In this document: piece by piece, positions 18,462-54,071 of the stretch
Position numbering within the stretch: the stretch's first letter is position 1
Layout of the letters: each line of letters opens with the position of its first letter
IMG/VR virus record: IMGVR_UViG_3300021959_006010
Coordinates: 1-64,000 of that record
Length of the DNA: 64,000 nt
Reading direction: 5' to 3' (one strand)
Position numbers and translations under genes: made by a program
The notes under the pieces: generated by a model
What the model saw: only the letters and a program-made list of their open reading frames with translations
Database searches by the model: none
What the model was told of the DNA's origin: nothing

Positions 18462-19405
18462 GCGACAAATTTAAAATTTTAGATTATGATATCATTTATC
18501 TAAGTTACGACGAGCCAAACGCAGAAAAAAACTATGCAGATCTGTGTAGTAAAGTACCGTGGGCTAAACGTGTACACGGTGTAGAAGGATCAGATGCTGC
18601 ACACAAAGCATGTGCCGAATTATCAGAAACAGAACGATTTATTACGATCGACGGCGACAATATTGTAAACGCTAAGTTCTTGCATCAAGAATATGATCTT
18701 AACAATCACGAAGACGTACATTGGAATAGAGAAGTTGACTTTGATCAGTGCGTAGTAAGTTGGACTGCCCGTAATACTATTAACGGATTAATGTACGGCA
18801 ACGGTGGCATTAAATGTTGGCCTAAAGATAAAGTGCTTAACATGAAGACACACGAAAATGCTGATCCCGACAACGTACATGCACAAGTTGATTTTTGTTG
18901 GGATTTACAATACATACAAATGAATACTTGTTATAGTGAGATTATGAATAATTATACTCCGCATCAAGCTTGGCGTGCCGGATTCCGCGAAGGTGTTAAG
19001 ATGGCGCTAGATCGCGGCATTAAACCTAGCAAAGAAGAGTTTCTAGCAGGACATTGGAAAAACTTGCATAGACTATGGATCTGGCTAATGGTAGGTGCTG
19101 ATGTAGAAAACGGACGTTGGGCTATCTACGGTGCTCGTGAAGGCTTGTACAAAACAATGTGTACAGACTGGGACTTTGTAAATGTGCGTGACTTTGAATG
19201 GTTGAATACTTATTGGGATAGTAAAAACTTAGACGAAGTGGATATGGATAGCGAAACAGACGAACTTGGTGATAAACTTATACACGAGTTAGGTATTCCT
19301 ATTGCAGTAGATCCGTTAAATGCAGATCAGAGTGCATTCTTTAAAACAGTGTACCAAAATCCTAGCCGTAATCCTAAACAGCAATTTGTGGTTGCTCCTG
19401 AATGA
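18458..19405 (+). CDS. Glycosyltransferase-like protein (GT-A, DxD)
   Basis: YDIIYLSYDEPNA...VHGVEG..AAH...FITIDGD...YGNGGIK...AWRAGFRE. Homologous to the C-terminal domain of 40203..42173. Confidence 0.65.
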   Translation: MSDKFKILDYDIIYLSYDEPNAEKNYADLCSKVPWAKRVHGVEGSDAAHKACAELSETERFITIDGDNIVNAKFLHQEYDLNNHEDVHWNREVDFDQCVVSWTARNTINGLMYGNGGIKCWPKDKVLNMKTHENADPDNVHAQVDFCWDLQYIQMNTCYSEIMNNYTPHQAWRAGFREGVKMALDRGIKPSKEEFLAGHWKNLHRLWIWLMVGADVENGRWAIYGAREGLYKTMCTDWDFVNVRDFEWLNTYWDSKNLDEVDMDSETDELGDKLIHELGIPIAVDPLNADQSAFFKTVYQNPSRNPKQQFVVAPE

Positions 19406-20991
19406 AACTAAATGATATAAAATGGATCAGAGATAAAAATGGCGAATTAACTAGTGATCCGGTTAACGTTGAAAACGTTAACAAACTACTTAATTCGAAA
19501 GGTTGTGGATTTTGTCTTGCAAAATTTACACAAGTTACTATGCATCTTGGTACAGGACATATACATAGTTGCCACCATCCAAGGATGCATAAAATCTCTC
19601 TTGACGAGATACAAAACGATCATAGAGCATTGTTTAATACACAGCATTTAAAATATGCAAGAAAGCAAATGCTAAACAACGAAAAACCTCCTGAGTGCGA
19701 TTATTGCTGGCGTGTTGAAGCAGACGGTAATTTAAGTGATAGGAGTTTCAAGAGTAGCAAGATGTGGGCTCTTGAAAAGTATGACGATATTGTAGAATAT
19801 ACAGGCAATGAAAATATTGCTCCTAGTTATTTAGAAGTAAGTTTTTCTAATGTTTGTAATATGAGTTGTTTGTATTGCGGTCCAGAATTTAGTTCTAAAT
19901 GGGTAGAAGATTTAAAACAAAAAGGTCCAATAAAAGTTTTAGAAGGAACAGACCACGAAAGATGGGTACAAGGATGGCAGGACCTTGATACATTAAATAT
20001 ACCTAATAGAGAACACAATCCTTACATAGAAGCATTTTGGAAATGGTTCCCAGAAGTTTATCCTAATCTTGAAACTTACCGCATTACAGGCGGCGAGCCT
20101 TTAATGAGTAAAGAAACTTTTCGAAGCATGGATTGGCTTGCTGAAAATCCTAATCTAAAACTTGATTTTAGTATCAACACAAATCTAAGTGTACCGGATA
20201 AACTTTGGGATACGTTTATTGAAAAGCTTGTTAAGATTAAAGATAATACAGTTAAAGGAGTAACTGTATTTACAAGTGTTGAAGCATGGGGTAAACGTGC
20301 AGAGTATCTGCGTAGAGGTTTAGATTTTGAAGTATTTAAAAAACGTTATGAGCAACTTGCACAGTTAGGTAATGTTAAAGTTGTAATTATGGCTGCATAC
20401 AATGTTTTAAGTATTACAAGTTTTAAAGACTTGCTCGAATGGCAACTTGAAATGAAGAAAAAATACAATTACAATAGTGCAGTTCTTTGGTGGGAAGAAA
20501 ATACACCTTACAAGTTTAGAGAAGGACTTTCTAATGCAGAACTTAAAAAGAGATCACCGTCTCATATTTTGCCACTAGGTTTAGACATTCCCTATCTAAG
20601 ACATCCTCCGTTTTTGGATGCACAAATCTGCACCGACGAACTTACACAAGAATATATGATTCCTGCTATGGAATATATGGCACGTAATACTGTAGACAAC
20701 AAATGGGTTATGCATATGAGTTTTGAATTAAACGAAATGTATAAATTAAAACAAATTACAGATCACAAAATGAGTGTAACATATTCTGTGCATCCAGGCA
20801 CTGAAGATTATTTTAAAAAAATTACGCACCCTCGAGCAGAATTTTTTGATTTTATTAATGCAAAGGACAAAAGAGACGGAACAGACTTTTTAGAAGTATT
20901 TCCTGAAATGGAAGACTTTTATATGAAGTGCTACGAAGCAAAGCAAGAAGTAGAAAAAAGAAATTCAAAAAATGTTAGTACTGGCACATGA
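19402..20991 (+). CDS. Radical SAM protein with N-terminal twitch/SPASM-like domain
   Basis: CNMSCLYC (CxxxCxxC) and TGGEP. N-terminal FCLAKF...G....CHHP...CDYC. Confidence 0.9.
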   Translation: MKLNDIKWIRDKNGELTSDPVNVENVNKLLNSKGCGFCLAKFTQVTMHLGTGHIHSCHHPRMHKISLDEIQNDHRALFNTQHLKYARKQMLNNEKPPECDYCWRVEADGNLSDRSFKSSKMWALEKYDDIVEYTGNENIAPSYLEVSFSNVCNMSCLYCGPEFSSKWVEDLKQKGPIKVLEGTDHERWVQGWQDLDTLNIPNREHNPYIEAFWKWFPEVYPNLETYRITGGEPLMSKETFRSMDWLAENPNLKLDFSINTNLSVPDKLWDTFIEKLVKIKDNTVKGVTVFTSVEAWGKRAEYLRRGLDFEVFKKRYEQLAQLGNVKVVIMAAYNVLSITSFKDLLEWQLEMKKKYNYNSAVLWWEENTPYKFREGLSNAELKKRSPSHILPLGLDIPYLRHPPFLDAQICTDELTQEYMIPAMEYMARNTVDNKWVMHMSFELNEMYKLKQITDHKMSVTYSVHPGTEDYFKKITHPRAEFFDFINAKDKRDGTDFLEVFPEMEDFYMKCYEAKQEVEKRNSKNVSTGT

Positions 20992-22192
20992 TTGGGTTGG
21001 GCCAGAAGGAATATGGCCAAACGGACAAAATTTAGATTTCTACAGCAATCCTCGTTCTTACGAAAAGTCGTACTATTCTATTAGTAATATACATCCTTAC
21101 AATTTAGAAAGTTATAGACATCTTTTTACGTATTCTAAATTAGAATCTGTAATAGGTAATGTCTTTACTCGTAAACACATATCCGAATGCAAAGGAAAAT
21201 TTATATACGAGATAACACCTCTACTGAAACCTTATCAGTGGGCAGACAGAGCATTTGATAATGTTAGTAAATTAGCAATTACTAAACAGCAACAAGGAAT
21301 GTGTTTGTTTGTTATAAACGATATGAATGAAGGATACTCTAATGTAGAATATAATTTTTTTGATGCATTGCATAGACAAATAGAAAGGTATAATTTATTA
21401 CCTGAAAATGTTTTATATATTACAATGAACGCAGTTCTTGAACAGTTTTACAAAGAATGGTGTTTGTCTAATAATATTAACAAGCAAATAAGAATACATT
21501 CTGTTTTTATATTCGAAAACAAGTACAATACAGGAAGTATTACTAATTGTAGTAAGCATTACATTTGTCTAAACAGACAACCTAATCCTTATAGACAGTG
21601 TTTAGTATACGAACTTTGGTGTCGAGGCTTGTTAAAATATGGATATGTTAGTATGCCTGATCCTAGCATACCACTAGATGTTAGTTTTAATAAAGAAAAT
21701 CTAAAGTTATTTAATTTGGACGATTCAAGGTGGGACGAATTTATTTCAACGTTGCCGTACGAAGTTGACGGAAGAGATTTTACATCACAAAGTTGCGATT
21801 TAAATAGTATAAGTGATTTTTATAAAGATAGTGTTTATGCTATTATTTCTGAAAATACATATGGAGAACAAGACTGCATCAAATTTTCAGAAAAAACGTT
21901 TAATGCTTTTGACAATTATTGCATACCTCTTTATTTTTATAATGCAGGAATAGCTAAGGAGTTAAATAAAATTGGATACGTTGCTGACGACAGCATCGAT
22001 AGTGTTTCAAACTTACAAGAAAAATTTTATGCGTTTGTCAACAGGGTTGAAGATATTTGCAAAATTCCAATAGTTCAATTGAATAAGAATACTAGTAGTA
22101 CTAGAAGTAAAAATTTTAAAAATTTACAATTGAGAAGCAAAGACCGTAAAGATAGATATTTGGAGATGTTTAACGGATGGGAAGAATATTAG
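20972..22192 (+). CDS. Putative glycosyltransferase (GT10/GT-B-like, SEKT family)
   Basis: CLNRQP.PYR and IISEN...FSEKTF, reminiscent of the GT10 EN...TEK motif. Paralogues at 35866 and 43335. Confidence 0.5.
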   Translation: MLVLAHDWVGPEGIWPNGQNLDFYSNPRSYEKSYYSISNIHPYNLESYRHLFTYSKLESVIGNVFTRKHISECKGKFIYEITPLLKPYQWADRAFDNVSKLAITKQQQGMCLFVINDMNEGYSNVEYNFFDALHRQIERYNLLPENVLYITMNAVLEQFYKEWCLSNNINKQIRIHSVFIFENKYNTGSITNCSKHYICLNRQPNPYRQCLVYELWCRGLLKYGYVSMPDPSIPLDVSFNKENLKLFNLDDSRWDEFISTLPYEVDGRDFTSQSCDLNSISDFYKDSVYAIISENTYGEQDCIKFSEKTFNAFDNYCIPLYFYNAGIAKELNKIGYVADDSIDSVSNLQEKFYAFVNRVEDICKIPIVQLNKNTSSTRSKNFKNLQLRSKDRKDRYLEMFNGWEEY

Positions 22193-23067
22193 TAACAGGA
22201 AGTAGTGGTTTTTTAGGAAACGCTCTCTGCAAAAGATTGTCTAATCTCGGTTATTTAGATGTTGACGGATTAGACATGGTTCCTGGCCAGTATACTAATA
22301 TTAGAGATTCGGTAGAAAACTTAAACGAAACGTATGATGTGATTTTCCATTTTGCTGCATTTGTAGGAGGCAGAGAAGGCATCGAAAACGATTATCTTAG
22401 AGTTGCAGAAAACATAGAGTTAGATCGAAATCTTTTTGGATTTGTTCAGCGTAACAACATAAAAAAGTTTATATATCCTAGTAGTAGTGCAGTCTATCCT
22501 ATAATTAATCAAGGAACAGATAATATTCCGCTATCTGAAGATATAATTGATTTTGCAACTAATAAAATAGGAGTTAGCGATCATTTGTACGGCTGGACAA
22601 AACTAACAGCAGAAAGAATGCTATGGGAAATAAACAAACACTGTGATACTAAAATATCTGTTGTTCGTCCGTTTAGTGGATACGGGCCTACACAAAGTAC
22701 AGACTATCCTGTTCCTAATCTTATTAACATTATCAAAAACAATCCTGATAATATAGAAGTTTGGGGTACAGGAGAACAAACAAGAGATTTTGTATATATT
22801 GATGATGTAGTTAAAACTTTAACATGGTGTATGGCCGATAATCAAAAATATAAAACATTAAATATAGGTACTGGTATACAAACTAGTTTTATAGATTTAA
22901 TCAATACTGCACATACAATTATACACGGCCGAAAGCCAAAAAATATTAAAAAATTAGTACATAAGCCAGTTGGTGTAATGCACCGTTACTGTGATCCAAC
23001 TCTACAACAAAAACTTAGAGTTTATCCTACTACTAGTTTAGAAGAAGGTATTAAAAAGTTTCTATGA
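22177..23067 (+). CDS. NAD-dependent NDP-sugar epimerase/dehydratase (extended SDR)
   Basis: ILVTGSSGFLG, HFAA, SSSAVY, YGWTK (YxxxK) and WGTGEQTRDFVYIDD. Confidence 0.9.
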   Translation: MGRILVTGSSGFLGNALCKRLSNLGYLDVDGLDMVPGQYTNIRDSVENLNETYDVIFHFAAFVGGREGIENDYLRVAENIELDRNLFGFVQRNNIKKFIYPSSSAVYPIINQGTDNIPLSEDIIDFATNKIGVSDHLYGWTKLTAERMLWEINKHCDTKISVVRPFSGYGPTQSTDYPVPNLINIIKNNPDNIEVWGTGEQTRDFVYIDDVVKTLTWCMADNQKYKTLNIGTGIQTSFIDLINTAHTIIHGRKPKNIKKLVHKPVGVMHRYCDPTLQQKLRVYPTTSLEEGIKKFL

Positions 23068-26208: not shown

Positions 26209-27261
26209 ATGAAGAGACATTTAATTTTAACTATATCAGACCCGCAAGACAAAGCTGATACACTTGACTTGAGAATTGACGTAAACGATACTGATATTTC
26301 CGAGCATTGGTTTAGTCACGTATGTAAATGCTTAGATACTAAGTTACATTTAGAGAAAAACTTTTGTTGGGTAGGCTGGCCCGATCCAGGACGTAACGTA
26401 GATTACTTAAAGAACGAACTACAAGAATGTGTTAACCAAATTAACACATTTGCTAAAACTAGTAACGAGTGGAACGGATATCGAATAGAAGAAGATTGGG
26501 ACGATATAGGTAGCCACGATGCTTTAAATAAATTACACCATCACTTCGAAATACTAATGGGTCAAGTGTGGGACGTAAGTCATTACATGATTACAGCAGA
26601 TGACAATACAAAGTATCAAATACGACAGTTGAATAATCTGGTACACGAATTACAAAGCAGACAAGTTGCTGTCGGATGTCCAATAGAATACTGTCAACCA
26701 CATACTATTGCAAGTTATCTTAATGTAGAACGAGAATTGTTTGAAGATCATTACTTTGATTACTTTAGCCATACACGAGAGTTTGGAGAAGTTTACTTGC
26801 ACTACTCACAAACAGGTAAAACTCCTGTAGAAGCGTATTCAGACAATGATGATGACGTGTTTGATAACAATATTAATGCACTAAGATACGTGTCCGGCGA
26901 ATATAACATTTGGTGGGGAGACCCTATGTCTGAAAAAGATGTTTTGTATTTTAAAGATCAAGTAAGAGGTTATTTAAACGAACGTAATCTTATTGTAGAG
27001 GAAGGTCCGGAATTTAATTATTATGTTGACAGTCAAGGAAACAAACAAGGAATAGGATATGTTCCGGTAGCAAAAGTTGTTAATCCGTACGATACTAGCC
27101 ACGAACTCAAGGCAGCTGTGCTTGATAAATTAAATATACATGCACTTGCTGCTTATATCGACGATACCGAAGTTGCTAAACACGTTTGGGATTACTCTTG
27201 GGCTGATAGTGACTATAAAGAAAAAGAAATAGACACACTAAGAGAGTTTTTCCCGAGATAA
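26209..27261 (+). CDS. Hypothetical protein, His-motif family member 1
   Basis: LNKLHHHFE...LNNLVHELQS...YSQTGKT. Paralogous to 30587 and 32671. Confidence 0.75.
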   Translation: MKRHLILTISDPQDKADTLDLRIDVNDTDISEHWFSHVCKCLDTKLHLEKNFCWVGWPDPGRNVDYLKNELQECVNQINTFAKTSNEWNGYRIEEDWDDIGSHDALNKLHHHFEILMGQVWDVSHYMITADDNTKYQIRQLNNLVHELQSRQVAVGCPIEYCQPHTIASYLNVERELFEDHYFDYFSHTREFGEVYLHYSQTGKTPVEAYSDNDDDVFDNNINALRYVSGEYNIWWGDPMSEKDVLYFKDQVRGYLNERNLIVEEGPEFNYYVDSQGNKQGIGYVPVAKVVNPYDTSHELKAAVLDKLNIHALAAYIDDTEVAKHVWDYSWADSDYKEKEIDTLREFFPR

Positions 27262-27262: not shown

Positions 27263-28669
27263 ATGGCTGACTATAATAATGACTATCATAAATTAGTAAA
27301 CAAAGTAAAAGTTGACTTAGATAAAGTTGGCAAAGGATTTTGCTTGGCAAAATGGTACCATGTAAGTATGCATTTGCACACAGGGCAAAACCACAGTTGT
27401 TATCATCCACATGTACACAAGATTCCTTTAGAAGAAATTAAAGATGATGTAAATGCATTACACAACACAAAGTGGAAAAAGCAACAACGTAAAACTATGT
27501 TAGAAGGAGGACGTCCTCCAGAATGTAGCTATTGCTGGGACATTGAAGACCTTCCAGGCGATAACATATCAGATAGACATTTAAGATCAAGTGAGCATTG
27601 GGCATTGCCTAAGATGCAACAAGCTATAGACACTCCTTGGGACGCTAATGTGTATCCAACTTATTTAGAAGTAAATTTTGGTCATGAGTGTCAATTAAAA
27701 TGCAGCTATTGTGCGCCAATGGCAAGTTCTAGTTGGTTTAATGAAACTAAAAAACATGGTGATTGGCCCTTAGAAGGTAATGCAAACCGCGGGCAATATA
27801 ATATTAGAGGATTGTTGGAGCCTGGTGCGTTATACAAAAAAGAATCTGAAAACCCATATATAGAAGCATTTTGGAAATGGTTTCCAAATGCTTATCCTAA
27901 TCTAGAAACACTTAGATTTACAGGCGGAGAGCCTTTATTAAGTTCAAACGTATTTAAAGTTATTGACTATATTAGAGAAAATCCTAGAGATGACTTAGAG
28001 TTTGCTATTAATAGCAATATGTGTATTCCAAAACGTAACTTAGACAAGTTTTGCAAGCAAGTTGATGACCTATTGCGTTCTAATAAAATACGTCAAGCAA
28101 ATATTTTTACAAGTGTAGACACATGGGGCACACAAGCTGAATGGATTCGTAATGGACTAGACATTGAAAAGTACGAAGATAACTTACATTATTTTATGAA
28201 TAATGTTTACAATTCTAGTTTTAGTTTTATGATTACGTTTTGTTTGCTTAGTATTCCGAACTTTAATTTATTACTAGATAAAATATTGGAATTCCGTCAA
28301 AAGTACAACGATCCGGATAGTATGTTTCAGCGTATTAATTTTGATACTCCGTATATGCTAGAACCTCCGCATTTAACAGCACGTATTGCTGACGACGAAA
28401 CTGTTGCTAAACTACGTAGTCATTTAGACTATATGGAAACATTAGTTGATAATAAAGATATTAACAAATTTAATACTACTGAATATATGAAATTTAAACG
28501 TGTTGTCGAATGGGTCGAAAACAATAGGTATCAAGGCGACGAACTAAAAACTAATAGAAGAGATTTTGCAAAATTTATAGACGAACACGATCGTCGACGC
28601 AAGACTGACTGGCATTCTGCATTTCCTGAAATGGAAAACTTTTATTTAATGTGTAAGGGCGATCTATGA
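27263..28669 (+). CDS. Radical SAM protein with N-terminal twitch/SPASM-like domain
   Basis: CQLKCSYC and TGGEP. N-terminal FCLAKW...CYHP...CSYC. Close paralogue of 19402 (shared NPYIEAFWKWFP). Confidence 0.9.
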   Translation: MADYNNDYHKLVNKVKVDLDKVGKGFCLAKWYHVSMHLHTGQNHSCYHPHVHKIPLEEIKDDVNALHNTKWKKQQRKTMLEGGRPPECSYCWDIEDLPGDNISDRHLRSSEHWALPKMQQAIDTPWDANVYPTYLEVNFGHECQLKCSYCAPMASSSWFNETKKHGDWPLEGNANRGQYNIRGLLEPGALYKKESENPYIEAFWKWFPNAYPNLETLRFTGGEPLLSSNVFKVIDYIRENPRDDLEFAINSNMCIPKRNLDKFCKQVDDLLRSNKIRQANIFTSVDTWGTQAEWIRNGLDIEKYEDNLHYFMNNVYNSSFSFMITFCLLSIPNFNLLLDKILEFRQKYNDPDSMFQRINFDTPYMLEPPHLTARIADDETVAKLRSHLDYMETLVDNKDINKFNTTEYMKFKRVVEWVENNRYQGDELKTNRRDFAKFIDEHDRRRKTDWHSAFPEMENFYLMCKGDL

Positions 28670-29379
28670 GAGTAGGAATATTTGGTGATAGTTTTGCTAC
28701 TCACGGTAAACATGGAATCTCTGAAATAGGAGAAAGCTGGGTTTCGCTTTTAGAAAAAACACCTGGTCTCGATGTTACAGCCAACGGTCAAATGGCGGAT
28801 AATATTTACGGAACATATTCTAATATATTAGAGAATTATCATCATTTTGACACTATTATTTTTGTAATTACTTCTCCTGAGAGAGCAATTACGTCATTCC
28901 GTAAATTGGCTAGTTATCCTATGATGGAACATGTTCTTAAAACTGAAAAATTTACAAGAGAGCAAAAAGACATTATAAAATCTATCAAAGATTATCATTT
29001 TTATGCATTACAAGATAGCGCAGTTTATAATCAACTAATCGAATCTAATAAATTAATGATCGAAAAAGTTAGAAGAATTATAACTAATAGCAGACGTAAC
29101 TTAATACTAGTGCCAGCGTTCGAAGCAAGTAAAAAAGTATGTAAGGATCTAAAAGGTATCTCGCTTAGTTGCGTAACTGAATATGAAGATTTAAATACAG
29201 ACATTAAAAAAAGTAGCAAAAAAGGATACGATCTAAGACACTGCCACATGTCAGAAGAAAATAATAGAATTTTTTATGATTATATAATGAGTATTTTAAA
29301 AACTCCTGGAGTACAGACTACTAATTTAAATTTAGATATGTTTGTTATACCAGACAGCGTAGAGAAATATGCAACATGA
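28666..29379 (+). CDS. SGNH/GDSL-like protein
   Basis: IFGDSF near the N-terminus and CHMSEENN near the C-terminus. Confidence 0.6.
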   Translation: MRVGIFGDSFATHGKHGISEIGESWVSLLEKTPGLDVTANGQMADNIYGTYSNILENYHHFDTIIFVITSPERAITSFRKLASYPMMEHVLKTEKFTREQKDIIKSIKDYHFYALQDSAVYNQLIESNKLMIEKVRRIITNSRRNLILVPAFEASKKVCKDLKGISLSCVTEYEDLNTDIKKSSKKGYDLRHCHMSEENNRIFYDYIMSILKTPGVQTTNLNLDMFVIPDSVEKYAT

Positions 29380-43125: not shown

Positions 43126-43333
43126 TCTAAGTATGAGAGAGTTGCAAACTGAAAGTGCTAGAGCACTAAGTACTATGCAAGCAACGAACAATAACATACA
43201 TCAATTTAACAAACGTGCTCACCATAATAGTCAAAATTGGTACAAGGCTGTAATTGAATGGTATGTAGAACAGTACGGTGGTTTACCTAGTAAAACAGGT
43301 CCAGGTAAAGATGTAAAGCTGGTATTAGAATAA
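43112..43333 (+). CDS. Small hypothetical protein
   Basis: 73-aa ORF filling the gap between coupled genes. GAGG upstream of a TTG start. Confidence 0.6.
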   Translation: MDINDLSMRELQTESARALSTMQATNNNIHQFNKRAHHNSQNWYKAVIEWYVEQYGGLPSKTGPGKDVKLVLE

Positions 43334-44213: not shown

Positions 44214-44635
44214 AAACTATAATAGTAGTAGATGCATGGAAAAATTGTCTTGAAAAGGATGTTTTAATGTTTCCTTTTTTAGAAAAAGAAACTAAGTCCT
44301 TTGGTCAATATCTTAATGTTTGTCTTTCAAATTTAAGAAATAATTATAAAATAGTACACTGCCCAGGTGATCGAACTATTATGGAAGAAATTGATACGAG
44401 CAGCGATCAAATTATAAGCAGTGTCGATGTTTTAGATAAAGAGGGCGAATATTACTTTTGCGGGTTCCATCTTGGAAGGTGTATACAAAGAAAATATAGA
44501 GAGCTTGAAGCTGAAAATAAAAAAATTATATATAATCTTAGTTTACTTTTTCCTGCAGACACACTTAATAATATTGACAAATCTTTAAACTACTGCTATT
44601 ATACATACAAAGGTTTTACAGATGTACAAATATGA
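44210..44635 (+). CDS. Isochorismatase/cysteine-hydrolase-like protein
   Basis: IIVVDAW and FCGFHLGRCI. ATGA-coupled start at 44210. Confidence 0.45.
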   Translation: MKTIIVVDAWKNCLEKDVLMFPFLEKETKSFGQYLNVCLSNLRNNYKIVHCPGDRTIMEEIDTSSDQIISSVDVLDKEGEYYFCGFHLGRCIQRKYRELEAENKKIIYNLSLLFPADTLNNIDKSLNYCYYTYKGFTDVQI

Positions 44636-45701
44636 AGACATAAGAACGATCCATTTGGAAAACACACAAAACTGCCAGGCGAGTTGTCCTATGTGTGATC
44701 GTAATCAAAATGGCGGAGATTTAAATCCGCATATTGATTTAAGCGAATTAACACTTGAAGATTGCAAACGTATTTTTGAACCGGAGTTTATTGCACAGCT
44801 TAAAACAATGTATATGTGCGGTAACTTAGGTGATCCGATTGTTGCAAGAGATACATTAGAAATTTTCAAATACTTCCGAGAGCATAACGCAGACATGTGG
44901 CTTTCAATGAATACAAACGCAGGAGCAAAAAGTGTTGAATGGTGGCAAGAACTTGCCCAAGTCTTTGGTAGAATGGGTGCTGTTATTTTTAGTGTGGATG
45001 GTCTTAGTGACACTAATCATTTATACAGGCAGGGTGTTGTCTGGGACAATGTAGAACGTAATATGCAGGCGTTTATTGACGCTGGCGGCAGAGCACGTTG
45101 GGACTTTTTAATATTTGAACACAATCAACATCAAGTAAAAGAAGCTGAGGCACTAGCATGGGAATGGGGTTGTGAAAGATTTATACCTAAAAAGACAGGT
45201 AGGTTTATTACAGCAGACAGTAAAAAGAAAGAATCTCATCAGGCTGTAAATCGCAAAGGCAAAGAAACTACAGAACTCAAAAAGCCGGACGAAAAATACC
45301 TTAACAAAGCATTAAGTAAACAAGATTCTCTTTTAGAAAAGTACGGCAGCATGGATGCATACTATGATGTAGTACCTATCAACTGTAAAGTCAAAGACGA
45401 AGGAAATTTGTTTATTACAGCAGAAGGACTTGCTATGCCTTGCTGTTGGACTGCTGGGCGTATGTACAAATGGTGGCACAAAGATCCTAAGGTAGAACAG
45501 GTATGGGACTTTATTGATGCTGTAGGCGGCAAAGATGCCATTAATGCTAAAAAACACGGATTACGTGCAGTATTTGAAACAGGAATATTTGATAATATTG
45601 AAGATAGCTGGAGCGTAAAAGGTTGCTCAAACGGAAAATTAAAAGTATGCTCGATGAAGTGCGGAGTTGAATTTGATCCTTTCGGAGCTCAATTCGAGTA
45701 A
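44622..45701 (+). CDS. Radical SAM protein with C-terminal twitch/SPASM domain
   Basis: CQASCPMC, CGNLGDP and FSVDG. C-terminal C...GLAMPCC...CSMKC. Confidence 0.9.
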   Translation: MYKYEDIRTIHLENTQNCQASCPMCDRNQNGGDLNPHIDLSELTLEDCKRIFEPEFIAQLKTMYMCGNLGDPIVARDTLEIFKYFREHNADMWLSMNTNAGAKSVEWWQELAQVFGRMGAVIFSVDGLSDTNHLYRQGVVWDNVERNMQAFIDAGGRARWDFLIFEHNQHQVKEAEALAWEWGCERFIPKKTGRFITADSKKKESHQAVNRKGKETTELKKPDEKYLNKALSKQDSLLEKYGSMDAYYDVVPINCKVKDEGNLFITAEGLAMPCCWTAGRMYKWWHKDPKVEQVWDFIDAVGGKDAINAKKHGLRAVFETGIFDNIEDSWSVKGCSNGKLKVCSMKCGVEFDPFGAQFE

Positions 45702-47007: not shown

Positions 47008-48417
47008 ATGAACAAATACGATAAAATTTCTCCCACATTTTGTGCGCTTCCGTGGCTACACTTATCAAGTAGGCCAGACGGTAAAATGCGCACCTGCTGT
47101 ACTAGTAATGCTAGTAGTGTACAAGACCCTAATAGTATGATAAAAAGCGGAGGCGGAGAAGTTGGCGTTATCAAAAATGACAAAGGCGAAAGTGTAAATT
47201 TTAATAACACATCTTTAGAAGAAGCGTGGAATAGTTCTTATATGCGAAATGTACGTAATATGATGTTACGTGGAGAACAGCCTGCTAGTTGTATAAAGTG
47301 TTATAAAGAAGAAGCAGCAGGCCATTTAAGTAAAAGAAACTGGGAAACAGAATACTGGGGCAACAGATATAATCTTCAAGAACTAGTAGACGAAACAGCC
47401 GAAGATGGCACTATACCTCCTAAGATACGCTATATTGATCTACGAATGGGGTCAAAGTGTCAACTTGCATGTGTTATGTGTAGTCCACACGATAGTAGCG
47501 GCTGGATTAAAGAGTGGCAACAAATACATCCTCAAATAGAAAACGAAAGACTAAAGAGTAGTTCGCAATGGGATAATAAAGGTCTCAGCTACGGTAGCAG
47601 TTATAACTGGCATAAGAACAATCCTCGTTTTTGGAACGATCTTATGGATCAGATTCCGCACATGTATCAGTTATACTTTGCAGGTGGCGAGAGTCTTATT
47701 ATTGACGAACATTATGATTTGCTTGAAGAATGTATTAAACGTGGACATGCAAAAAATATAGAACTAAGGTATAATAGTAATGCTGTTGAATGGCGCCCTG
47801 GATTGGCTTCTTTGTGGGCAGAGTTTAAACGTGTAAGATTCCATTACTCAATTGATGCACTCGGAGAACAAAATGATTACATACGATATCCAAGCCAATG
47901 GGAGCACCAAGAAGAGGTATTTTGGAAATTAGATAATACACCATCTCAAGTTGAAGTAACAACTGCAACAACAATTATGGCGTTAAATGCTGCATACATT
48001 CCTGACTTTATTAAGTGGAAGGTAAACGCTGGATTTAAAAAAATAAACAAATGGCCTTTAGGAGCAGGAGGTATTAATATGCATTTTGCATACTGGCCAC
48101 CGCAGTTAAATGTAAAAGTTTTACCTCAAGATATTAAACAACAAATTACAGACAAGTACGAAAACGAGTTTTATCCTTGGGTAGAAGAAAATTGGCAAAA
48201 CTTTACAGGTGTTAAAGAAGCCGGTATAACTAAAGAGCAATTCTTAAATGCACCTTACGGTCTAAAGCGTTATAAAGGAATTATTAATTTTATGAATAGC
48301 GAAGACTGGAGTGAAAGACTTCCTGAAACAAAAGAATGGTTACAACTTGTAAACAAGCAACGAGGATGGACTGAAAGATTTCCTAAAGTATTTCCAATAC
48401 TAAAGGATCTTGTATAA
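47008..48417 (+). CDS. Radical SAM protein with N-terminal twitch/SPASM-like domain
   Basis: FCALPW...GKMRTCC...CIKC, CQLACVMC and AGGES. Confidence 0.9.
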   Translation: MNKYDKISPTFCALPWLHLSSRPDGKMRTCCTSNASSVQDPNSMIKSGGGEVGVIKNDKGESVNFNNTSLEEAWNSSYMRNVRNMMLRGEQPASCIKCYKEEAAGHLSKRNWETEYWGNRYNLQELVDETAEDGTIPPKIRYIDLRMGSKCQLACVMCSPHDSSGWIKEWQQIHPQIENERLKSSSQWDNKGLSYGSSYNWHKNNPRFWNDLMDQIPHMYQLYFAGGESLIIDEHYDLLEECIKRGHAKNIELRYNSNAVEWRPGLASLWAEFKRVRFHYSIDALGEQNDYIRYPSQWEHQEEVFWKLDNTPSQVEVTTATTIMALNAAYIPDFIKWKVNAGFKKINKWPLGAGGINMHFAYWPPQLNVKVLPQDIKQQITDKYENEFYPWVEENWQNFTGVKEAGITKEQFLNAPYGLKRYKGIINFMNSEDWSERLPETKEWLQLVNKQRGWTERFPKVFPILKDLV

Positions 48418-49538
48418 TGTATTGTAGTGCTCCGTGGACAACTGTCCAAATTAAAAACGATGGTCAGTTTAGTTATTGCTGTATGAGTAGAGATCCTATC
48501 GGTAAAGAATTAAATGATCCCGATTTGGTAGATGGACGCAATAGAATGATATCTGGAGAAATACTGCCAGTATGCCAGACTCAATGTTTTGATAATGAAA
48601 AATTCTTTAGCAGTCAGCGATTAGATTTAAACAGACGATATCCTATAAAAAACGATATTTCTCCAGCTGCAAATCCTGAACATATAGAATACATTGATTT
48701 ACGAATGGGTAATATATGTAATTATATGTGTTTAATGTGCGGTGACAGAGATAGCCACTTATGGGGTAAAGCAAACAAAAAAGAAAATCCTTATATTAGC
48801 TGGGCTAAAGATCCTGTGCAGTATCAGCGTATTATGGATTTTATTGCAAGTTGTAAAAATCTAAAGTGTATTAGTTTAGCCGGCGGAGAACCTTTTTATA
48901 ATAAAAAACAATTGTTTGATGTTATTGATAGATTGCCTAGAGATTTAGAATTAAAATTTATTACTAATGTTAGTTTTTGTGATGACGAAATTATAGCAAA
49001 ACTAAACGAATTTAAAACCGGAAGGTTACACTGTAGTATCGACGGTGTAGGACGTTGGGTAGAAGCACAAAGGTATCGTAGCAGCTGGGAACTTATTGAA
49101 AAAAATATGATGAAGTTTGCTACTGAACTACACGAGCATTGGGTAACTAGACTAGTGCCTACTTTTAGTGCAATCAACACTTATGGGTTAGAAGAGTTTG
49201 CAGACTGGATTATGAATGTGTATACTCCGACTAGGAAGTATGCTAGAATGGGATTTACTTTGGTTAAATGGCCAGACCATATGACCTTGTATAATATTCC
49301 GTTAGCAACTCGCAGACAAATTGTATCTAACATTAGAAGTAAAAATTATAAACATCCTGAAATTGACCGTTTATTAGAAGCTATTGAAAAGGATATTAAG
49401 CCTGACGAAAAAACAGTTGATGATTTTCGTAAGTATTTAGAATATGTAAAACATTCTACAGGGTTTGATACATTAGATGCTATACCTGAACTTAAAGAAA
49501 TAGTTGGAGATGATGATCTTGGACAGTGGCAAAAATAA
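48417..49538 (+). CDS. Radical SAM protein with N-terminal twitch/SPASM-like domain
   Basis: YCSAPW...GQFSYCC...CQTQC, CNYMCLMC and AGGEP. Confidence 0.9.
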   Translation: MYCSAPWTTVQIKNDGQFSYCCMSRDPIGKELNDPDLVDGRNRMISGEILPVCQTQCFDNEKFFSSQRLDLNRRYPIKNDISPAANPEHIEYIDLRMGNICNYMCLMCGDRDSHLWGKANKKENPYISWAKDPVQYQRIMDFIASCKNLKCISLAGGEPFYNKKQLFDVIDRLPRDLELKFITNVSFCDDEIIAKLNEFKTGRLHCSIDGVGRWVEAQRYRSSWELIEKNMMKFATELHEHWVTRLVPTFSAINTYGLEEFADWIMNVYTPTRKYARMGFTLVKWPDHMTLYNIPLATRRQIVSNIRSKNYKHPEIDRLLEAIEKDIKPDEKTVDDFRKYLEYVKHSTGFDTLDAIPELKEIVGDDDLGQWQK

Positions 49539-50748: not shown

Positions 50749-51437
50749 CATCTATAGCAACGTTTGGGTGTAGTTATACTGAAGGTATAACAGGATCAGA
50801 TTATAATTGGCCAGCTGAACTTGCTATGCTAAACGACAACTTTGAAATTTATAATTGTGCAAAATCAGGAACTAGTGTAGACTATTCTTTACATGTACTC
50901 GAAAATTTTCTAAAAATAAAAACGCCTGATATAGTTTTATTTCAAGTAACAACACCGCATCGTTTTACATATATCACAAACACTGAATCTAATATTTTTG
51001 AAATTAAAAAGCATAGTAAAAACTATTATAAGTTTGATATTAAAGACAACAAAGACTTAGGATTTATAAATGCTGGATCAATGAGTTTAAAAAACAACAT
51101 GCGAAGAGGTTTTACAAATGCTAAGACTGTACAGGAATTTGCTTTACTATATTATAAACTAGTAGGTAAGAATGTTATAGATAAAACTAAATTTAATGCA
51201 TATTTTTCCTACATAAAAAAATTATTAAAAGATATACCGCACTTGATAATAGCACACGATCTTTCAGAAGACGAATGGATTACTTTTAACTTTATCGATT
51301 TTGATATAAGAAAAAGGTTATCCGACCCAATTTTTGAAAGTTATATAATCGACAACGGACGTCACTTATCAAGGGATGGATTAGTTAATGTGGCTAAATT
51401 ATTATTACAAGAGATCGAAGAAAGGAATATGATATGA
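50745..51437 (+). CDS. SGNH/GDSL-like protein
   Basis: TFGCSYTEG, NCAKSGTS and a C-terminal DNGRHLS. Confidence 0.6.
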   Translation: MTSIATFGCSYTEGITGSDYNWPAELAMLNDNFEIYNCAKSGTSVDYSLHVLENFLKIKTPDIVLFQVTTPHRFTYITNTESNIFEIKKHSKNYYKFDIKDNKDLGFINAGSMSLKNNMRRGFTNAKTVQEFALLYYKLVGKNVIDKTKFNAYFSYIKKLLKDIPHLIIAHDLSEDEWITFNFIDFDIRKRLSDPIFESYIIDNGRHLSRDGLVNVAKLLLQEIEERNMI

Positions 51438-52252: not shown

Positions 52253-52953
52253 TGGGTAAGATATATTCTTATAATTCCGAGTCGATTGAGTTACCTGACT
52301 TAGATGTTGATGTTATAGCATTGTCACTTAGTGGCGGTGCAGATAGTGCGCTATTAGCATTTCTTATAGCTAAAGATATAGTTGAGTCTAATTCTAAAAC
52401 TAAAATTTTGCCTTTTACAAGATACAGACCTTGGCCTGAAGAAGCACCAAGAAACTGGAACGTTACAAGAGCTAAAGATGTAATACAAAAAATAGTTGAA
52501 ATTTTAGAAACAAATGTTTTTCTAGACTTGCATGTAGAATATCCGCAGATTCAAAGGATGATGACTGTTGCAGAAGAACGAGAACACGTAAAAGATTTAC
52601 ATAAAAAACTTGTTGATTTTACTAAAAATCAAGGGTACAAAAGTTGTAAATTTTATTACGGTGTAACATCAAATCCTAGCAAGGAAGTAATGATCGAAAA
52701 TGATTTTTTATATGATTATAGAATCAAAGACAGAGATGTAAAAAATAGACAAAAAAGAGATACTCGTCCTTTTGACTTAGTTGATAAAAAGTTTATTGCA
52801 GAAATTTATAAGTTAGAAAACTTACTAGATACACTTTTTCCTATCACATATTCTTGTGAAGGAGACCATAATTCTACAAAAAATTATTCTGTACACTGTG
52901 AAACGTGCTGGTGGTGCAAAGAAAGATTATGGGCATTTGGGAGACTTATTTAA
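52252..52953 (+). CDS. QueC-like PP-loop ATPase with C-terminal Zn-binding cysteines
   Basis: LSLSGGADSA (PP-loop) and TYSC...HCETCWWCKER. Confidence 0.65.
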   Translation: MGKIYSYNSESIELPDLDVDVIALSLSGGADSALLAFLIAKDIVESNSKTKILPFTRYRPWPEEAPRNWNVTRAKDVIQKIVEILETNVFLDLHVEYPQIQRMMTVAEEREHVKDLHKKLVDFTKNQGYKSCKFYYGVTSNPSKEVMIENDFLYDYRIKDRDVKNRQKRDTRPFDLVDKKFIAEIYKLENLLDTLFPITYSCEGDHNSTKNYSVHCETCWWCKERLWAFGRLI

Positions 52954-54071
52954 TGCCAGAATGTAATATGCTAGAAAATCATATGTGTATTACTGTTAAC
53001 GGAGCATGGCGTCCTTGTTGCCGGTTTAACGAAGATGTGCAACCGTGGAATGAAAGAATGAGAGTAGAAGACTACTCTTTTCAAGAATACCGTAGTAGTA
53101 AATTTTATCAAGAAATAAAGGCAGCACAAAAGACAGGCTGGCACGAAGGCTGCAAGGGTTGCGAAATCGCAGAACAAACAGGCACATCTAGCACTAGACT
53201 TATATTTGGAGAAAAGCTTTCTGGTGTTAAAGATCAAGTAGAATATATAGAAATAAGTTTAAGTGACGAATGTAATCTTGCTTGTAAAATGTGCGGACCG
53301 TGGGCTAGTAGTACATGGAATAAAATTGCTCTCGAAAATACCGAAACATTAGAAGGATTTATTAAACCTCAAAAATTTACTTTTACAGCCGATGTTGAAA
53401 AAGTGTTTAATGATATAGATTTTACACATATTAATTCTGTAAAAATATTAGGAGGAGAGCCCTTTATTGTTCCCGAAACTAAAAAATTTTTAGAGTTATT
53501 AGACAATAACGGAATATTACCAAATGTTAATATTATGACTAATACTAATGTTACATTTTTTCCTAAAAAGCTAGTAAAATATCTTACTAAAGCAAAGACA
53601 CTATCTATTGCAATGAGCTTAGATGGAGTTAACAGAATAAACGATTATATTAGATACAAAAGTGATTGGCAAACTGTTCTTGATGTTATAGCACAGTGGA
53701 AAGAATTTTATAAAAATAGACATGACAAAAATTCTTTAAAATTTGCAAGTGTTATAAATGCCTACAATGTACATCAAGTAACTGAAATGAGAGAGTTTGC
53801 AGAAAGTAATAATATAGAATTACAGTATAATATTATAAACAGTCCGAGATATTTGAGACTTGATGCTCTTCCTTTAACTTATGTAGACGAACTAGCCAAT
53901 AAATACAAAGATACCAAAGACCACGGTGTTTATAGATATTTAAATTCTATAAAATGTAACGAGAAGTACCTCAAAGAATTGAAAGAATATACTGTTCGAA
54001 TGGATAAAATTACAGGTATAAATTTAAAAGATTATAATCTTTCTTTAGCAAAGGCACTTGACATTTTGTAA
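52953..54071 (+). CDS. Radical SAM protein with N-terminal twitch/SPASM-like domain
   Basis: ECNML...GAWRPCC...CKGC, CNLACKMC and LGGEP. TAATG-coupled start at 52953. Confidence 0.9.
   Translation: MPECNMLENHMCITVNGAWRPCCRFNEDVQPWNERMRVEDYSFQEYRSSKFYQEIKAAQKTGWHEGCKGCEIAEQTGTSSTRLIFGEKLSGVKDQVEYIEISLSDECNLACKMCGPWASSTWNKIALENTETLEGFIKPQKFTFTADVEKVFNDIDFTHINSVKILGGEPFIVPETKKFLELLDNNGILPNVNIMTNTNVTFFPKKLVKYLTKAKTLSIAMSLDGVNRINDYIRYKSDWQTVLDVIAQWKEFYKNRHDKNSLKFASVINAYNVHQVTEMREFAESNNIELQYNIINSPRYLRLDALPLTYVDELANKYKDTKDHGVYRYLNSIKCNEKYLKELKEYTVRMDKITGINLKDYNLSLAKALDIL

Follow-up and report, generated by a model that had tools for sequence, protein, structure and literature searches.

An array of ten diverged N-terminal-twitch radical SAM genes lies among sugar-handling genes next to the tail fibres of an uncultured phage

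We report that an uncultured marine or estuarine phage carries ten diverged copies of a named but uncharacterised radical SAM family among sugar-handling genes next to its tail fibre genes, and that this is an extreme case of a module that is common in uncultured phages and nearly absent from cultured ones. The sequence analysed here (henceforth referred to as the window) is the first 64 kb (64,000 nucleotides) of the 275-kb IMG/VR phage contig IMGVR_UViG_3300021959_006010, and ORFs are referred to by their start positions in it. The original prediction, made from the sequence alone, was that ten paralogous ORFs encode radical SAM enzymes with a twitch domain at the N-terminus and a shared C-terminal tag, and we were able to confirm this observation. 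All ten ORFs are present on the + strand (Table 1), and even though alternative upstream TTG/GTG starts exist for three of them (31416, 49504 and 52905), the ATG starts originally assigned fit the N-terminus of the family. Each ORF contains the pattern C-x12/13-G-x4-C(C)...CxxC ahead of CxxxCxxC, with CxxxC (C53/C57) in place of CxxC in 48417, and in a ten-way alignment C9, C27, C73, C76, C126, C130 and C133 (29376 numbering) are invariant. The cluster cysteines are also invariant in 428 viral homologues, and all ten copies keep the GGE motif. In a search against NCBIfam, all ten scored 205–410 bits over the whole 398-position profile of NF033640 (N_Twi_rSAM), above its curated cutoff of 170, and Pfam SPASM matched the N-terminal residues (about 4–99) in five of the ten. 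The similarity among the ten is not due to chance, as pairwise BLASTP E-values ranged from 1e-101 to 4e-5. Five further radical SAM genes, which had not been recognised in the original prediction, lie in the same block, giving 15 radical SAM genes in all.

Table 1. Features of the 64-kb window, with the observations that support each assignment. R0–R4 are the orthologous groups of N_Twi radical SAM genes; f2, f4 and f5 are protein families of the module; L006 and L008 are related loci.
Coordinates	Strand	Feature	Supporting observations
272..15775	+	Giant virion structural protein, three tail-fibre paralogs and a Gly/Ser/Thr-rich f5 protein, all upstream of the island	PHROG hits to a virion structural protein and to tail fibre proteins; the order f7-f5 recurs in related loci
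14649..14664	+	Tandem TATAAATA (T4-type late promoter motif) before 14702	Motif depleted in the window: 3 found against 13.9 expected
15776..15804	+	Perfect sigma-70 consensus promoter match before 15829; two more perfect matches at 26164-26192 and 46957-46985	Three 12/12 matches, all in intergenic gaps, against 0.09 expected per strand
16169..17858	+	Two GT8-like (glycogenin-like) glycosyltransferase paralogs	Family profile hits glycogenin at E 1e-3 across the DxD region; hhalign probability between the two 94.7%; present in 63 of 83 viral loci
18458..19405	+	GT2-like protein, family f2, immediately upstream of an R2 gene	ESM Atlas clusters named 'Glycosyltransferase 2-like'; present in 61 of 83 loci; its C-terminal homologue in 40203 gives a weak Glyco_tranf_2_3 match
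19402..20991	+	N_Twi radical SAM, group R2 (529 aa)	NF033640 297 bits; tree group 2; 82-85% identical to L006/L008, dN/dS 0.06-0.08
22177..23067	+	NAD-dependent NDP-sugar epimerase/reductase	Pfam Epimerase 9e-38; GDP-fucose synthase-like at 86 bits
23064..24851	+	B12-binding radical SAM, KedN5-like (putative C-methyltransferase)	Pfam Radical_SAM plus a weak B12-binding match; NF033712 at 234 bits, below its cutoff of 700
26209..27261	+	Orphan-fold partner protein, family f4	Present in 56 of 83 viral loci; dN/dS 0.06-0.07; no PDB analogue, only uncharacterised phage proteins match in BFVD
27263..28669	+	N_Twi radical SAM, group R2 (468 aa)	NF033640 302 bits; 37% identical to 19402; dN/dS about 0.05
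29376..30590	+	N_Twi radical SAM, group R0 (404 aa); the copy that was modelled	NF033640 386 bits; Pfam SPASM at residues 9-77; AF2 pLDDT 94.2; dN/dS 0.03-0.05
30587..31444	+	f4-like paralog, directly upstream of the N_Twi gene at 31434	f4 profile E 1.2e-5; hhalign probability 91.5%
31434..32696	+	N_Twi radical SAM, group R4 (420 aa)	NF033640 324 bits; tree group 4
32671..33531	+	f4-like paralog, directly upstream of the N_Twi gene at 33528	f4 profile E 1e-4; hhalign probability 93%
33528..34697	+	N_Twi radical SAM, group R1 (389 aa)	NF033640 314 bits; tree group 1
34694..35869	+	Radical SAM with the core at the N-terminus and a Cys-rich C-terminus	Pfam Radical_SAM plus a weak SPASM match at 289-353; best NCBIfam match is N_Twi profile positions 108-268 only
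37026..38912	+	B12-binding radical SAM, paralog of 23064	Pfam B12-binding and Radical_SAM; 38% identical to 23064
38957..40183	+	Nucleotide-sugar dehydrogenase-like protein	Pfam UDPG_MGDP_dh N-terminal and central domains; TIGR03026 at 143 bits, below its cutoff of 189.8
43112..43333	+	Conserved 73-aa protein that normally sits directly before the 44622-type and 47008-type genes	Found in 66 of 79 loci at about 74% identity, conserved along its whole length
44622..45701	+	Radical SAM, paralog of 34694; conserved partner of the 47008 type	33% identical to 34694; found in 78 of 79 loci that carry a 47008-type gene, at about 73% identity
45710..46960	+	N_Twi radical SAM, outlier subfamily (416 aa)	NF033640 277 bits; falls in a small tree group
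47008..48417	+	N_Twi radical SAM (469 aa), widely conserved type	NF033640 410 bits; 67-87% identical in at least 79 viral contigs
48417..49538	+	N_Twi radical SAM (373 aa), CxxxC in place of CxxC	NF033640 205 bits
49510..50748	+	N_Twi radical SAM (412 aa), C-terminal motif degenerate	NF033640 236 bits
52953..54071	+	N_Twi radical SAM (372 aa), C-terminal motif degenerate	NF033640 214 bits
55066..56286	+	Further radical SAM enzyme	Pfam Radical_SAM 8e-16

To establish whether the N-terminal region is a twitch-type domain, we compared a profile of this region with BtrN (PDB 4M7S/4M7T), the butirosin 2-deoxy-scyllo-inosamine dehydrogenase and founding twitch enzyme. The profile aligned with BtrN 164–237 (E 5e-5), and the conserved cysteines fell on BtrN C169, C187, C232 and C235, which ligate its auxiliary cluster (Goldman et al. 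2013). An AF2 model of 29376 was confident, and in Foldseek searches its core matched anSME, BlsE, DesII, MoaA and SpeY. However, compared to BtrN and SpeY, the twitch domain is N-terminal rather than C-terminal, a helical C-terminal domain of about 90 residues is added, the similarity of the core is only generic (Foldseek TM about 0.25–0.4) and no substrate is known. The best structural and sequence matches for the core are SPASM peptide maturases (anSME, CteB, SuiB and SkfB), but the present family has four conserved auxiliary cysteines (room for one cluster, not two), a permuted domain order and no identified RRE or precursor.

We next considered the proposal that the shared C-terminal tag is a docking element. 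The four C-terminal strings originally given are present, and the full motif D..R...F...(F/L)PE occurs in 19402, 27263, 29376, 33528 and 45710, is partial in 31434, 47008 and 48417 and is degenerate in 49510 and 52953. However, the motif is part of the family profile and not a feature special to this genome, lies in a helical region modelled at pLDDT 96–98, is conserved across the family and occurs in 34–37 of 55 lone bacterial copies. The docking proposal is therefore not supported, and the tag, a folded part of the family that is also present in lone bacterial copies, is probably not a docking element.

The original prediction also held that the family, recognised mainly from uncultured samples, may be largely phage-borne. 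The family is recognised by NCBI as N_Twi_rSAM, with no function assigned, and is strongly enriched in uncultured viral contigs: IMG/VR gave at least 593 confirmed hits, compared to 122 in genomes of 185,579 species, and ESM Atlas clusters were 89–100% viral. In marked contrast, only 2–4 distant hits were detected in 50,697 GenBank phage records. The family is not exclusively viral, since bona fide bacterial chromosomes do carry single copies. Five copies were compared with relatives at 78–86% identity and gave dN/dS values of 0.02–0.08, indicative of strong purifying selection and among the best-conserved genes of the block, although dS was saturated (above 1.3), which makes these values rough, and the five block-2 copies were not covered by this test. 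A recent expansion is not supported either: the copies are old paralogs (20–37% identity), and four of the five orthologous groups found in other phages have a member here.

To determine whether the array recurs, we examined 83 related viral loci, in which arrays of 4–7 copies are the rule and 79 of which carry at least 4 copies within 21 kb. The copies fall into five orthologous groups that occur about once per locus, in the fixed order R2-R3-R0-R1/R4. Their neighbours are GT8-like and GT2-like transferases, the orphan-fold f4 partner, a NodU/CmcH-type carbamoyltransferase (56 of 83 loci), SGNH proteins and, in fewer loci, DegT sugar aminotransferases (13 loci) and NDP-sugar epimerases. In the window itself the carbohydrate context comprises the NDP-sugar epimerase, the nucleotide-sugar dehydrogenase-like protein, the GT8-like pair, GT2-like proteins and one Pfam-supported GDSL-like protein, whereas the carbamoyltransferase and the DegT aminotransferase are not in this window and several of the glycosyltransferase calls are weak (E 1e-3 to 4e-3, or motif only). 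DegT or epimerase genes also lie next to some lone bacterial copies, and GT2 is the joint commonest Pfam family among bacterial neighbours, although bacterial contexts are mixed and include ACP, ketosynthase and SDR in Paenibacillus, PqqD in two loci, and ABC transporters.

The location and content of the island agree with earlier descriptions of marine T4-like myophages. Radical SAM cassettes and glycosyltransferases were noted in the hypervariable ‘host recognition cluster’ of pelagimyophages (Zaragoza-Solas et al. 2020, PMC7029224), and a T4-like environmental genome with 12 radical SAM genes was reported (Nishimura et al. 2017, PMC5332604). The position, after the giant baseplate/virion protein and the tail fibres, and the content (GT8-type glycosyltransferases, UDP-glucose dehydrogenase and radical SAM cassettes) are the same, but those papers did not identify the radical SAM family, its orthologous groups or its partners, and the present island is larger (about 43 kb of enzymes, 15 radical SAM genes). 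The family name is known, whereas the picture at the level of the module, with arrays of five orthologous groups in phages, is new.

Overall, the interpretation given with the original prediction, namely an expanded phage-borne family performing different sugar oxidations or epimerisations, is partly supported. The analysis demonstrates family membership, cysteine architecture, purifying selection (in five copies), viral enrichment and conserved synteny; cluster binding, the chemistry and the substrate class are our inferences. A sugar or cyclitol substrate is plausible but not shown (the neighbours, namely glycosyltransferase-like proteins, an NDP-sugar epimerase, a UDP-sugar dehydrogenase and, in related loci, a NodU-type carbamoyltransferase and DegT aminotransferases, point that way), and a phage pathway for radical tailoring of a carbohydrate is the best reading, which we hold tentatively. 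No member of the family has been characterised, so that the chemistry is argued from BtrN by analogy and from neighbours, and neither the substrate nor the final target (virion, host envelope, DNA or a free metabolite) is shown. In addition, most SPASM/twitch enzymes modify peptides, a highly conserved 73-aa protein precedes the 44622/47008 pair, and five conserved radical steps on one sugar pathway would be without precedent. The same enzyme classes that co-occur across the phage module are found in aminoglycoside and sugar tailoring sets (a radical SAM dehydrogenase, a DegT aminotransferase, a TobZ/NodU carbamoyltransferase and B12 radical SAM C-methyltransferases such as GenK), and the pairing with a DegT aminotransferase in some related loci resembles that of BtrN, which works with BtrS; however, no cyclitol synthase or recognisable scaffold-forming enzyme was found, the product is unknown and the setting is a lytic phage genome.

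We considered whether the enzymes could instead modify a peptide or protein, as most SPASM/twitch maturases do, the candidate substrates being the tail fibre or f5 structural proteins (by epimerisation, or by C-C or C-O cross-links that harden them) or the 73-aa protein (as a RiPP-like precursor). This reading is possible but doubtful. In its favour, the array is fixed next to the tail fibre and f5 genes in many phages, secondary NCBIfam hits are mostly peptide maturases, the best Foldseek hits include anSME, CteB and SuiB, the 73-aa protein is conserved in 66 loci before two radical SAM genes, and PqqD occurs next to two bacterial homologues. However, the fibre and f5 proteins have 0–1 Cys, which excludes thioether links; the 73-aa protein varies at its C-terminal end despite being conserved along its whole length, unlike a typical leader-core precursor; the fibre genes carry late-type motifs while the island has sigma-70-type promoters; no PqqD/RRE domain was found in the window; and many neighbours are sugar enzymes.

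It is less likely that the same sugar-tailoring chemistry is directed at the host envelope, with the island remodelling LPS, O-antigen or capsule early in infection to block superinfection, which is the published reading of glycosyltransferases in these islands and is argued for pelagimyophage islands (PMC7029224). The perfect sigma-70 promoters that head the units suggest early expression by host polymerase, GT8 enzymes are typical of LPS synthesis, and an NDP-sugar dehydrogenase-like protein and an epimerase are present. However, no flippase, polymerase, ligase or undecaprenyl-phosphate transferase was detected in the window, the island proteins examined (by eye) showed no recognisable membrane proteins, and a lytic phage with a short latent period gains little from building a new polysaccharide in ten or more radical steps. 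Hypermodification of phage DNA or nucleotides, for example by glycosylating and tailoring a modified base, appears very unlikely. Early-type promoters are present, 52252 is a PP-loop protein with a weak QueC-like C-terminus (E 0.002), a PTPS/QueD-like gene lies near the cassette in one locus (L005), and DNA glucosyltransferases are early genes in T4; but the QueC hit is below threshold, no DpdA, hydroxymethylase, kinase or nucleotide-binding transferase was found in the window, the N_Twi enzymes are not QueE, and synteny with GT8, the carbamoyltransferase and the fibre genes is not explained. Finally, that most copies are redundant or decaying duplicates with no distinct function is the least likely reading, since even though two copies have a degenerate C-terminal motif, 48417 has CxxxC and block-2 gene content varies between phages downstream of the 47008 type, all ten keep every cluster Cys, the testable copies are constrained and the diverged copies have orthologues in other phages.

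We favour a view in which the ten genes are functional members of a family that places a BtrN-like twitch domain, presumably holding one auxiliary [4Fe-4S] cluster, ahead of the radical SAM core, and in which the hypervariable island downstream of the tail-fibre genes appears to be split into several units, each headed by a sigma-70-type promoter. In the inferred mechanism, each enzyme would cleave SAM at the CxxxCxxC cluster, the 5'-deoxyadenosyl radical would abstract a hydrogen from a carbohydrate-type substrate (an NDP-sugar, a cyclitol or a growing glycan) and the twitch cluster would then take the electron, so that the net reaction would be an oxidation or a rearrangement, as in BtrN. 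The different orthologous groups would act at different positions or steps and would work with the f4 partner proteins, the two B12-dependent methyltransferase-like radical SAMs, the GT8/GT2-like transferases, the SGNH proteins and the nucleotide-sugar enzymes to build a heavily tailored sugar structure.

We first examined whether the ten ORFs that begin with a Cys-rich region ahead of a radical SAM core, as described in the original prediction, are present and belong together, and found that the observation is real. All ten carry C-x12/13-G-x4-C(C) followed by CxxC (CxxxC in 48417; genes are named here by their first nucleotide), and then CxxxCxxC and a GGE motif. In an alignment of the ten proteins C9, C27, C73, C76, C126, C130 and C133 (29376 numbering) are invariant, and C126/C130/C133 together with G177-G178-E179, the signatures of the SAM-binding [4Fe-4S] cluster and of SAM binding in the partial TIM barrel of the radical SAM superfamily, are also conserved in 427 of 428 viral homologues. 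Pfam PF04055 (Radical_SAM) matches all ten at E <= 0.01, six of them above its gathering score, and Pfam SPASM matches the N-terminal residues of five, with Radical_SAM behind it. All ten match NCBIfam NF033640 (N_Twi_rSAM, twitch domain-containing radical SAM protein) at 205.3-410.3 bits against a curated cutoff of 170, with profile coverage running from positions 1-5 to 391-398 of 398. Pairwise identity is only 20-37%, so these are ancient paralogs. The C-terminal motif D..R...F...(F/L)PE is complete in five copies, partial in three and degenerate in 49510 and 52953. Five further radical SAM genes in the same block had been missed, which makes 15 radical SAM genes between 19402 and 56286.

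Features of the radical SAM island and its surroundings (a single number is the gene start)
Position	Strand	Feature	Group or remark
14649-14664	 	T4-type late promoter motif, tandem pair	just before 14702 (f5 gene)
15776-15804	+	perfect sigma-70 consensus match	
16169	 	GT8-like protein	
17022	 	GT8-like protein	
18458	 	GT2-like protein	
19402	+	N_Twi radical SAM	R2
22177	 	NDP-sugar epimerase/reductase	
23064	 	B12-binding, KedN5-like radical SAM	
25437	 	GDSL-like protein	
26164-26192	+	perfect sigma-70 consensus match	
26209-27261	 	orphan family f4	directly upstream of an N_Twi gene
27263	+	N_Twi radical SAM	R2
29376	+	N_Twi radical SAM	R0
30587-31444	 	orphan family f4	directly upstream of an N_Twi gene
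31434	+	N_Twi radical SAM	R4
32671-33531	 	orphan family f4	directly upstream of an N_Twi gene
33528	+	N_Twi radical SAM	R1
34694	 	radical SAM, core first, Cys-rich C-terminus	
37026-38912	 	B12-binding, KedN5-like radical SAM	
38957	 	nucleotide-sugar dehydrogenase-like protein	
40168	 	11/12 sigma-70 consensus match	before 40203
40203-42173	 	656-aa protein with internal repeats	
43112-43333	 	conserved 73-aa protein	no Cys
44574	 	11/12 sigma-70 consensus match	before 44622
44622	 	radical SAM, core first, Cys-rich C-terminus	
45710	+	N_Twi radical SAM	
46957-46985	+	perfect sigma-70 consensus match	
47008	+	N_Twi radical SAM	placed loosely in R1
48417	+	N_Twi radical SAM	placed loosely in R1
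49510	+	N_Twi radical SAM	
52252-52953	 	PP-loop protein	
52953	+	N_Twi radical SAM	
54058	 	11/12 sigma-70 consensus match	before 54108
54108	 	nitroreductase-like protein	
55066	 	further radical SAM enzyme	
57678-57685	 	T4-type late promoter motif	before 57741
57741	 	nitroreductase-like protein	
58408-63888	-	divergent gene block	
59266-59820	-	short SDR-like protein	
59831-60619	-	fatty-acid-desaturase-like protein	
62908-63888	-	326-aa relative of the C-terminal half of the B12 radical SAM enzymes	lacks the Cys motif

To determine whether the N-terminal region is a twitch domain (the one-cluster, truncated form of SPASM), we compared it with solved structures. A profile of the whole proteins matched BtrN only through its positions 5-79, which aligned with BtrN residues 163-237, and a profile of the N-terminal segments alone matched BtrN at E 5.3e-5 over residues 164-237 of 4M7S, with the conserved Cys falling on C169, C187, C232 and C235, which are the ligands of the auxiliary cluster of BtrN (Goldman et al. 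2013). A single-sequence phmmer search of the N-terminus against PDB missed BtrN, and only the profile found it. In the 428 viral homologues C9, C28, C73 and C76 are conserved in at least 426. The region therefore qualifies as a twitch domain by homology to a solved one and by conservation of the Cys, although binding of an auxiliary [4Fe-4S] cluster near the active site, on which the original prediction also rested, was not assayed here and is inferred. An AlphaFold2 model of 29376 is confident (pLDDT 94.2, pTM 0.89), and its predicted core matches solved radical SAM enzymes in Foldseek, namely anSME, CteB, GDGT-MAS, BlsE, MoaA, viperin, DesII and SpeY, with TMq of at most 0.42 and no full-length analogue. 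Since Foldseek aligns sequentially and matched only the core, and no permutation-aware superposition was made, whether the N-terminal domain occupies the place of the C-terminal twitch domain of BtrN in three dimensions, as in a true circular permutation, was not examined. Distances between the Cys clusters in the model were not measured; in BtrN they are about 15-17 Å. We also considered whether 34694 and 44622 could be unpermuted versions with the same twitch domain, but this was not supported, as the N-terminal twitch profile did not match their Cys-rich C-termini and only a weak Pfam SPASM hit exists for 34694.

The window is bases 1-64000 of the contig IMGVR_UViG_3300021959_006010 (275,366 bp), which is found in estuary and marine metagenomes. 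Upstream of the island lie a 2750-aa virion structural protein and three tail-fibre paralogs, a setting like that of the hypervariable ‘host recognition cluster’ of marine T4-like myophages, the description of which mentions GT8 glycosyltransferases, UDP-glucose dehydrogenase and ‘radical SAM cassettes’ (PMC7029224). A T4-like environmental genome with 12 radical SAM genes has also been reported (PMC5332604). Whereas the upstream side and the GT8-like genes fit such an island, the downstream border (gp14) was not identified within the window and the identity of the structural gene with VrlC was not tested by name, so that we leave the assignment to this island undecided. Literature searches for NF033640, N_Twi_rSAM and ‘N-terminal twitch’ returned nothing.

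We next considered the neighbouring genes. The epimerase/reductase 22177, the dehydrogenase-like 38957, the GDSL-like 25437 and the nitroreductase-like 54108 and 57741 have library support. UDP-glucuronate is the expected product of 38957. Profile or atlas support exists for the GT8-like pair 16169 and 17022 (glycogenin, E 1e-3), for the GT2-like 18458, and for the homologue of 18458 at the C-terminus of 40203, which gives a weak Glyco_tranf_2_3 match. Several internal repeats of about 110 aa are visible by eye in 40203 (for example SKRE.EYRF...EWD.V...YD.F...TYDDYL.A..N..TEMFWA), but a BLAST self-comparison did not report them. Further SGNH-like proteins, a sulfotransferase-like protein, GT-B-like proteins and a PP-loop protein are recognised by motif only, with weak library hits. 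Shallow profile comparisons among the SGNH-like trio and between 20972 and 35866 gave P of about 1e-3, which does not settle their relationships, and the sulfotransferase-like motif in 24821 and the GT-B-like ‘EK’ motif in 20972, 35866 and 43335 rest on reading by eye, with no Pfam, PHROG or PDB support. The PP-loop protein 52252, with an SGGADS motif and a C-terminal CxxCxxC, gives a weak QueC match (E 0.002) and a weak NAD_synthase match (E 0.017), and may be an ATP-dependent amidating enzyme. In the minus-strand block, the desaturase-like protein was recognised by His boxes seen by eye, and the short SDR-like protein is 29% identical to the gene between the two radical SAM genes in L002 (a phage contig). 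The B12-binding radical SAM protein 37026 is 99% identical to that at 16869-18755 of contig L007, the flanking genes of which are only 54-80% identical, which suggests a recent exchange of a single gene.

The three f4 proteins form a paralog trio (profile E 1e-5 and 1e-4, hhalign 91-93%). Searches with the f4 family found nothing in Pfam, PHROGs, PDB sequences, the ESM Atlas or PDB folds, and in BFVD the f4 model matches only uncharacterised phage proteins, including one from Agrobacterium phage Atu_ph07.

Relaxed selection had been named in advance as an outcome that would count against the original prediction. We measured dN/dS against the syntenic relatives L006 and L008, which are 78-86% identical in the radical SAM genes but only 54-67% identical in several neighbours. 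Values for 19402, 27263, 29376, 31434 and 33528 are 0.02-0.08, and those of the neighbours range from 0.06 to 0.30. Since dS is saturated these values are rough, and the copies of the second block were not included, but relaxed selection is excluded for these five genes.

To address whether the family lies mainly in viral or in cellular genomes, a question that had likewise been set beforehand, we searched several collections. The family profile finds 7,937 clusters (50% identity) at E <= 1e-30 among 1.84 billion representatives. Many family representatives (P0128-P0140 and others) are about 800 aa long with two N_Twi stretches and are either natural tandem fusions of neighbouring paralogs or merged gene calls; real fusions would argue for physical cooperation between copies. 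Scans with nearly the same patterns gave at least 600 matches in IMG/VR, of which at least 593 were confirmed, and 139 matches in genomes of 185,579 bacterial and archaeal species, of which 122 were confirmed; as the patterns and the collection sizes differ, this is only a rough sign of strong viral enrichment. ESM Atlas clusters near 29376 are 89-100% viral. In contrast, megablast of 24 kb against GenBank phages found no match, and tblastn of 47008 and 29376 against GenBank phages gave only 2-4 distant hits and no cultured model phage; Vibrio phages K566/K567 and Ralstonia phage RsoM2USA are distant leads to a phage that carries the module. Bacterial copies are nevertheless real: many lie on Mb-size contigs, mostly as single genes, in mixed contexts that include GT2, ABC transporters, SDR, ketosynthase, ACP, PqqD, DegT and epimerase genes. 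In L020, a Paenibacillus isolate, the single homologue is flanked by an acyl-carrier-type PP-binding protein and a FabG-like SDR, and ketosynthases occur among the bacterial neighbours scanned; a second Paenibacillus isolate, L041, has the same gene sizes and order but was not scanned on its own. This lipid or polyketide-like context differs from the phage context. Two ‘bacterial’ loci of a Haliscomenobacter MAG (L011 and L012, contigs of 183 and 148 kb) carry five N_Twi genes each together with the phage-module partners (GT8-like, GT2-like, f4 and carbamoyltransferase), and are probably phage contigs binned into a MAG, or prophages.

Related loci were retrieved with an alignment of 29376 relatives, as the ten paralogs together were too diverse for this purpose. 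Of 83 viral loci, 79 have at least 4 N_Twi genes within 21 kb, with a mode of 5, and a tree of 428 proteins resolves five groups (R0 to R4), each present about once per locus. Gene order is conserved: tail fibre, f5 (14702 type), f6, two GT8-like genes, f9/f15, GT2-like f2, R2, R3, R0, R1/R4, f4, f3 and SGNH, where f denotes families of neighbouring proteins. Family f3 is a NodU/CmcH-type carbamoyltransferase (Pfam 2e-47), and family f13, seen in 13 loci, is a DegT/DnrJ/EryC1 sugar aminotransferase (2e-70). A second conserved core, 42154 - 43112 - 44622 - 47008, is found in 50-79 of the 79 loci retrieved with 47008. The 73-aa protein 43112 is conserved at about 74% identity in 66 viral contigs and normally sits directly upstream of the 44622-type and 47008-type genes, although here two genes (43335 and 44198) are inserted between them; its role is unknown. 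The window combines both cores, but it lacks R3 and f3, and it adds the variable copies 45710, 48417, 49510 and 52953. In other phage contigs (L002-L004 and L005, from TARA and other sources) smaller cassettes, comprising a radical SAM gene, a short SDR-like gene, an N_Twi gene and an IscA-like Fe-S assembly protein, occur away from the tail fibres, near Cpn10, DNA ligase, ClpP and PTPS genes, so that the cassette moves within phage genomes and travels with Fe-S assembly genes.

We then searched the window for transcription signals. The three perfect TTGACA-17-TATAAT matches each lie in one of the few intergenic gaps, against a chance expectation of 0.09 perfect matches per strand, and together with the three 11/12 matches they seem to split the island into units, among them 15829-26180, 26209-40183 and 47008-54071. 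The T4-type late motif TATAAATA, on the other hand, is depleted in the window (3 found, 13.9 expected). These are consensus matches only, and no RNA run was listed for the locus, but they suggest that the fibre and f5 genes are late genes while the enzyme island is read by unmodified host polymerase, which weakens the idea that the island is co-transcribed late with the fibre genes.

The best-supported reading of these results is a phage-borne radical tailoring pathway for a carbohydrate-type substrate, with the twitch cluster acting as electron acceptor as in BtrN. Support comes from the sugar enzymes in the window, from the carbamoyltransferase, aminotransferase and epimerase genes across the module, and from some bacterial contexts. 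The family assignment is secure, but this reading, like cluster binding, remains an inference: oxidation of a secondary alcohol of a sugar or cyclitol to a ketone with one SAM consumed per turnover, the reaction of BtrN-type alcohol dehydrogenases, was not measured, and only gene context speaks for it. The target is open, and could be the virion, the host envelope, DNA or a free product. The original prediction, that the family may be largely phage-borne and expanded for different sugar oxidations or epimerisations with the C-terminal tag as a docking element, is thus only partly supported. In particular, a docking role is unlikely, since the C-terminal motif is part of the family profile, lies in helices modelled at pLDDT 96-98 and is present in 34-37 of 55 lone bacterial copies.

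The main rival is modification of a peptide or protein, either the fibre or f5 proteins or the 73-aa protein. No PqqD or RRE match was found among the window proteins scanned, and the 73-aa ORF is conserved throughout and lacks Cys, whereas RiPP maturases would be expected beside a precursor with a variable core; however, PqqD occurs beside 2 of 18 bacterial homologues, and these observations do not decide the matter. A more far-reaching possibility, which we consider doubtful but not excluded, is that the N_Twi arrays, together with the f4 partners, the carbamoyltransferase and the B12 methyltransferase-like enzymes, are a phage-specific biosynthetic pathway in which five or more consecutive radical steps would make a new class of densely tailored sugar or aminocyclitol-like structure. 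The product would either decorate the virion or be released as a small molecule, and such chemistry would be hidden so far because no cultured phage carries the module.

Overall, the family is already named, and what is new is the module-level picture: five orthologous groups in fixed order, orphan f4 partners paired with the radical SAM genes, strong viral enrichment with near absence from cultured phages, and this window as an extreme, composite example. Radical SAM enzymes are costly and oxygen-sensitive, yet this phage keeps fifteen of them, under purifying selection where that could be tested, and hundreds of uncultured phages keep a five-gene version in fixed order. The family is large, has no known function and appears to be the first twitch family with the auxiliary domain in front of the core, and the orphan f4 fold and the 73-aa protein are further unexplored partners. 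Working out one reaction would annotate thousands of genes and add new radical carbohydrate (or peptide) chemistry to the enzyme toolbox, and it would show what phages build in their most variable island, which bears on host range, superinfection exclusion and virion surface chemistry.
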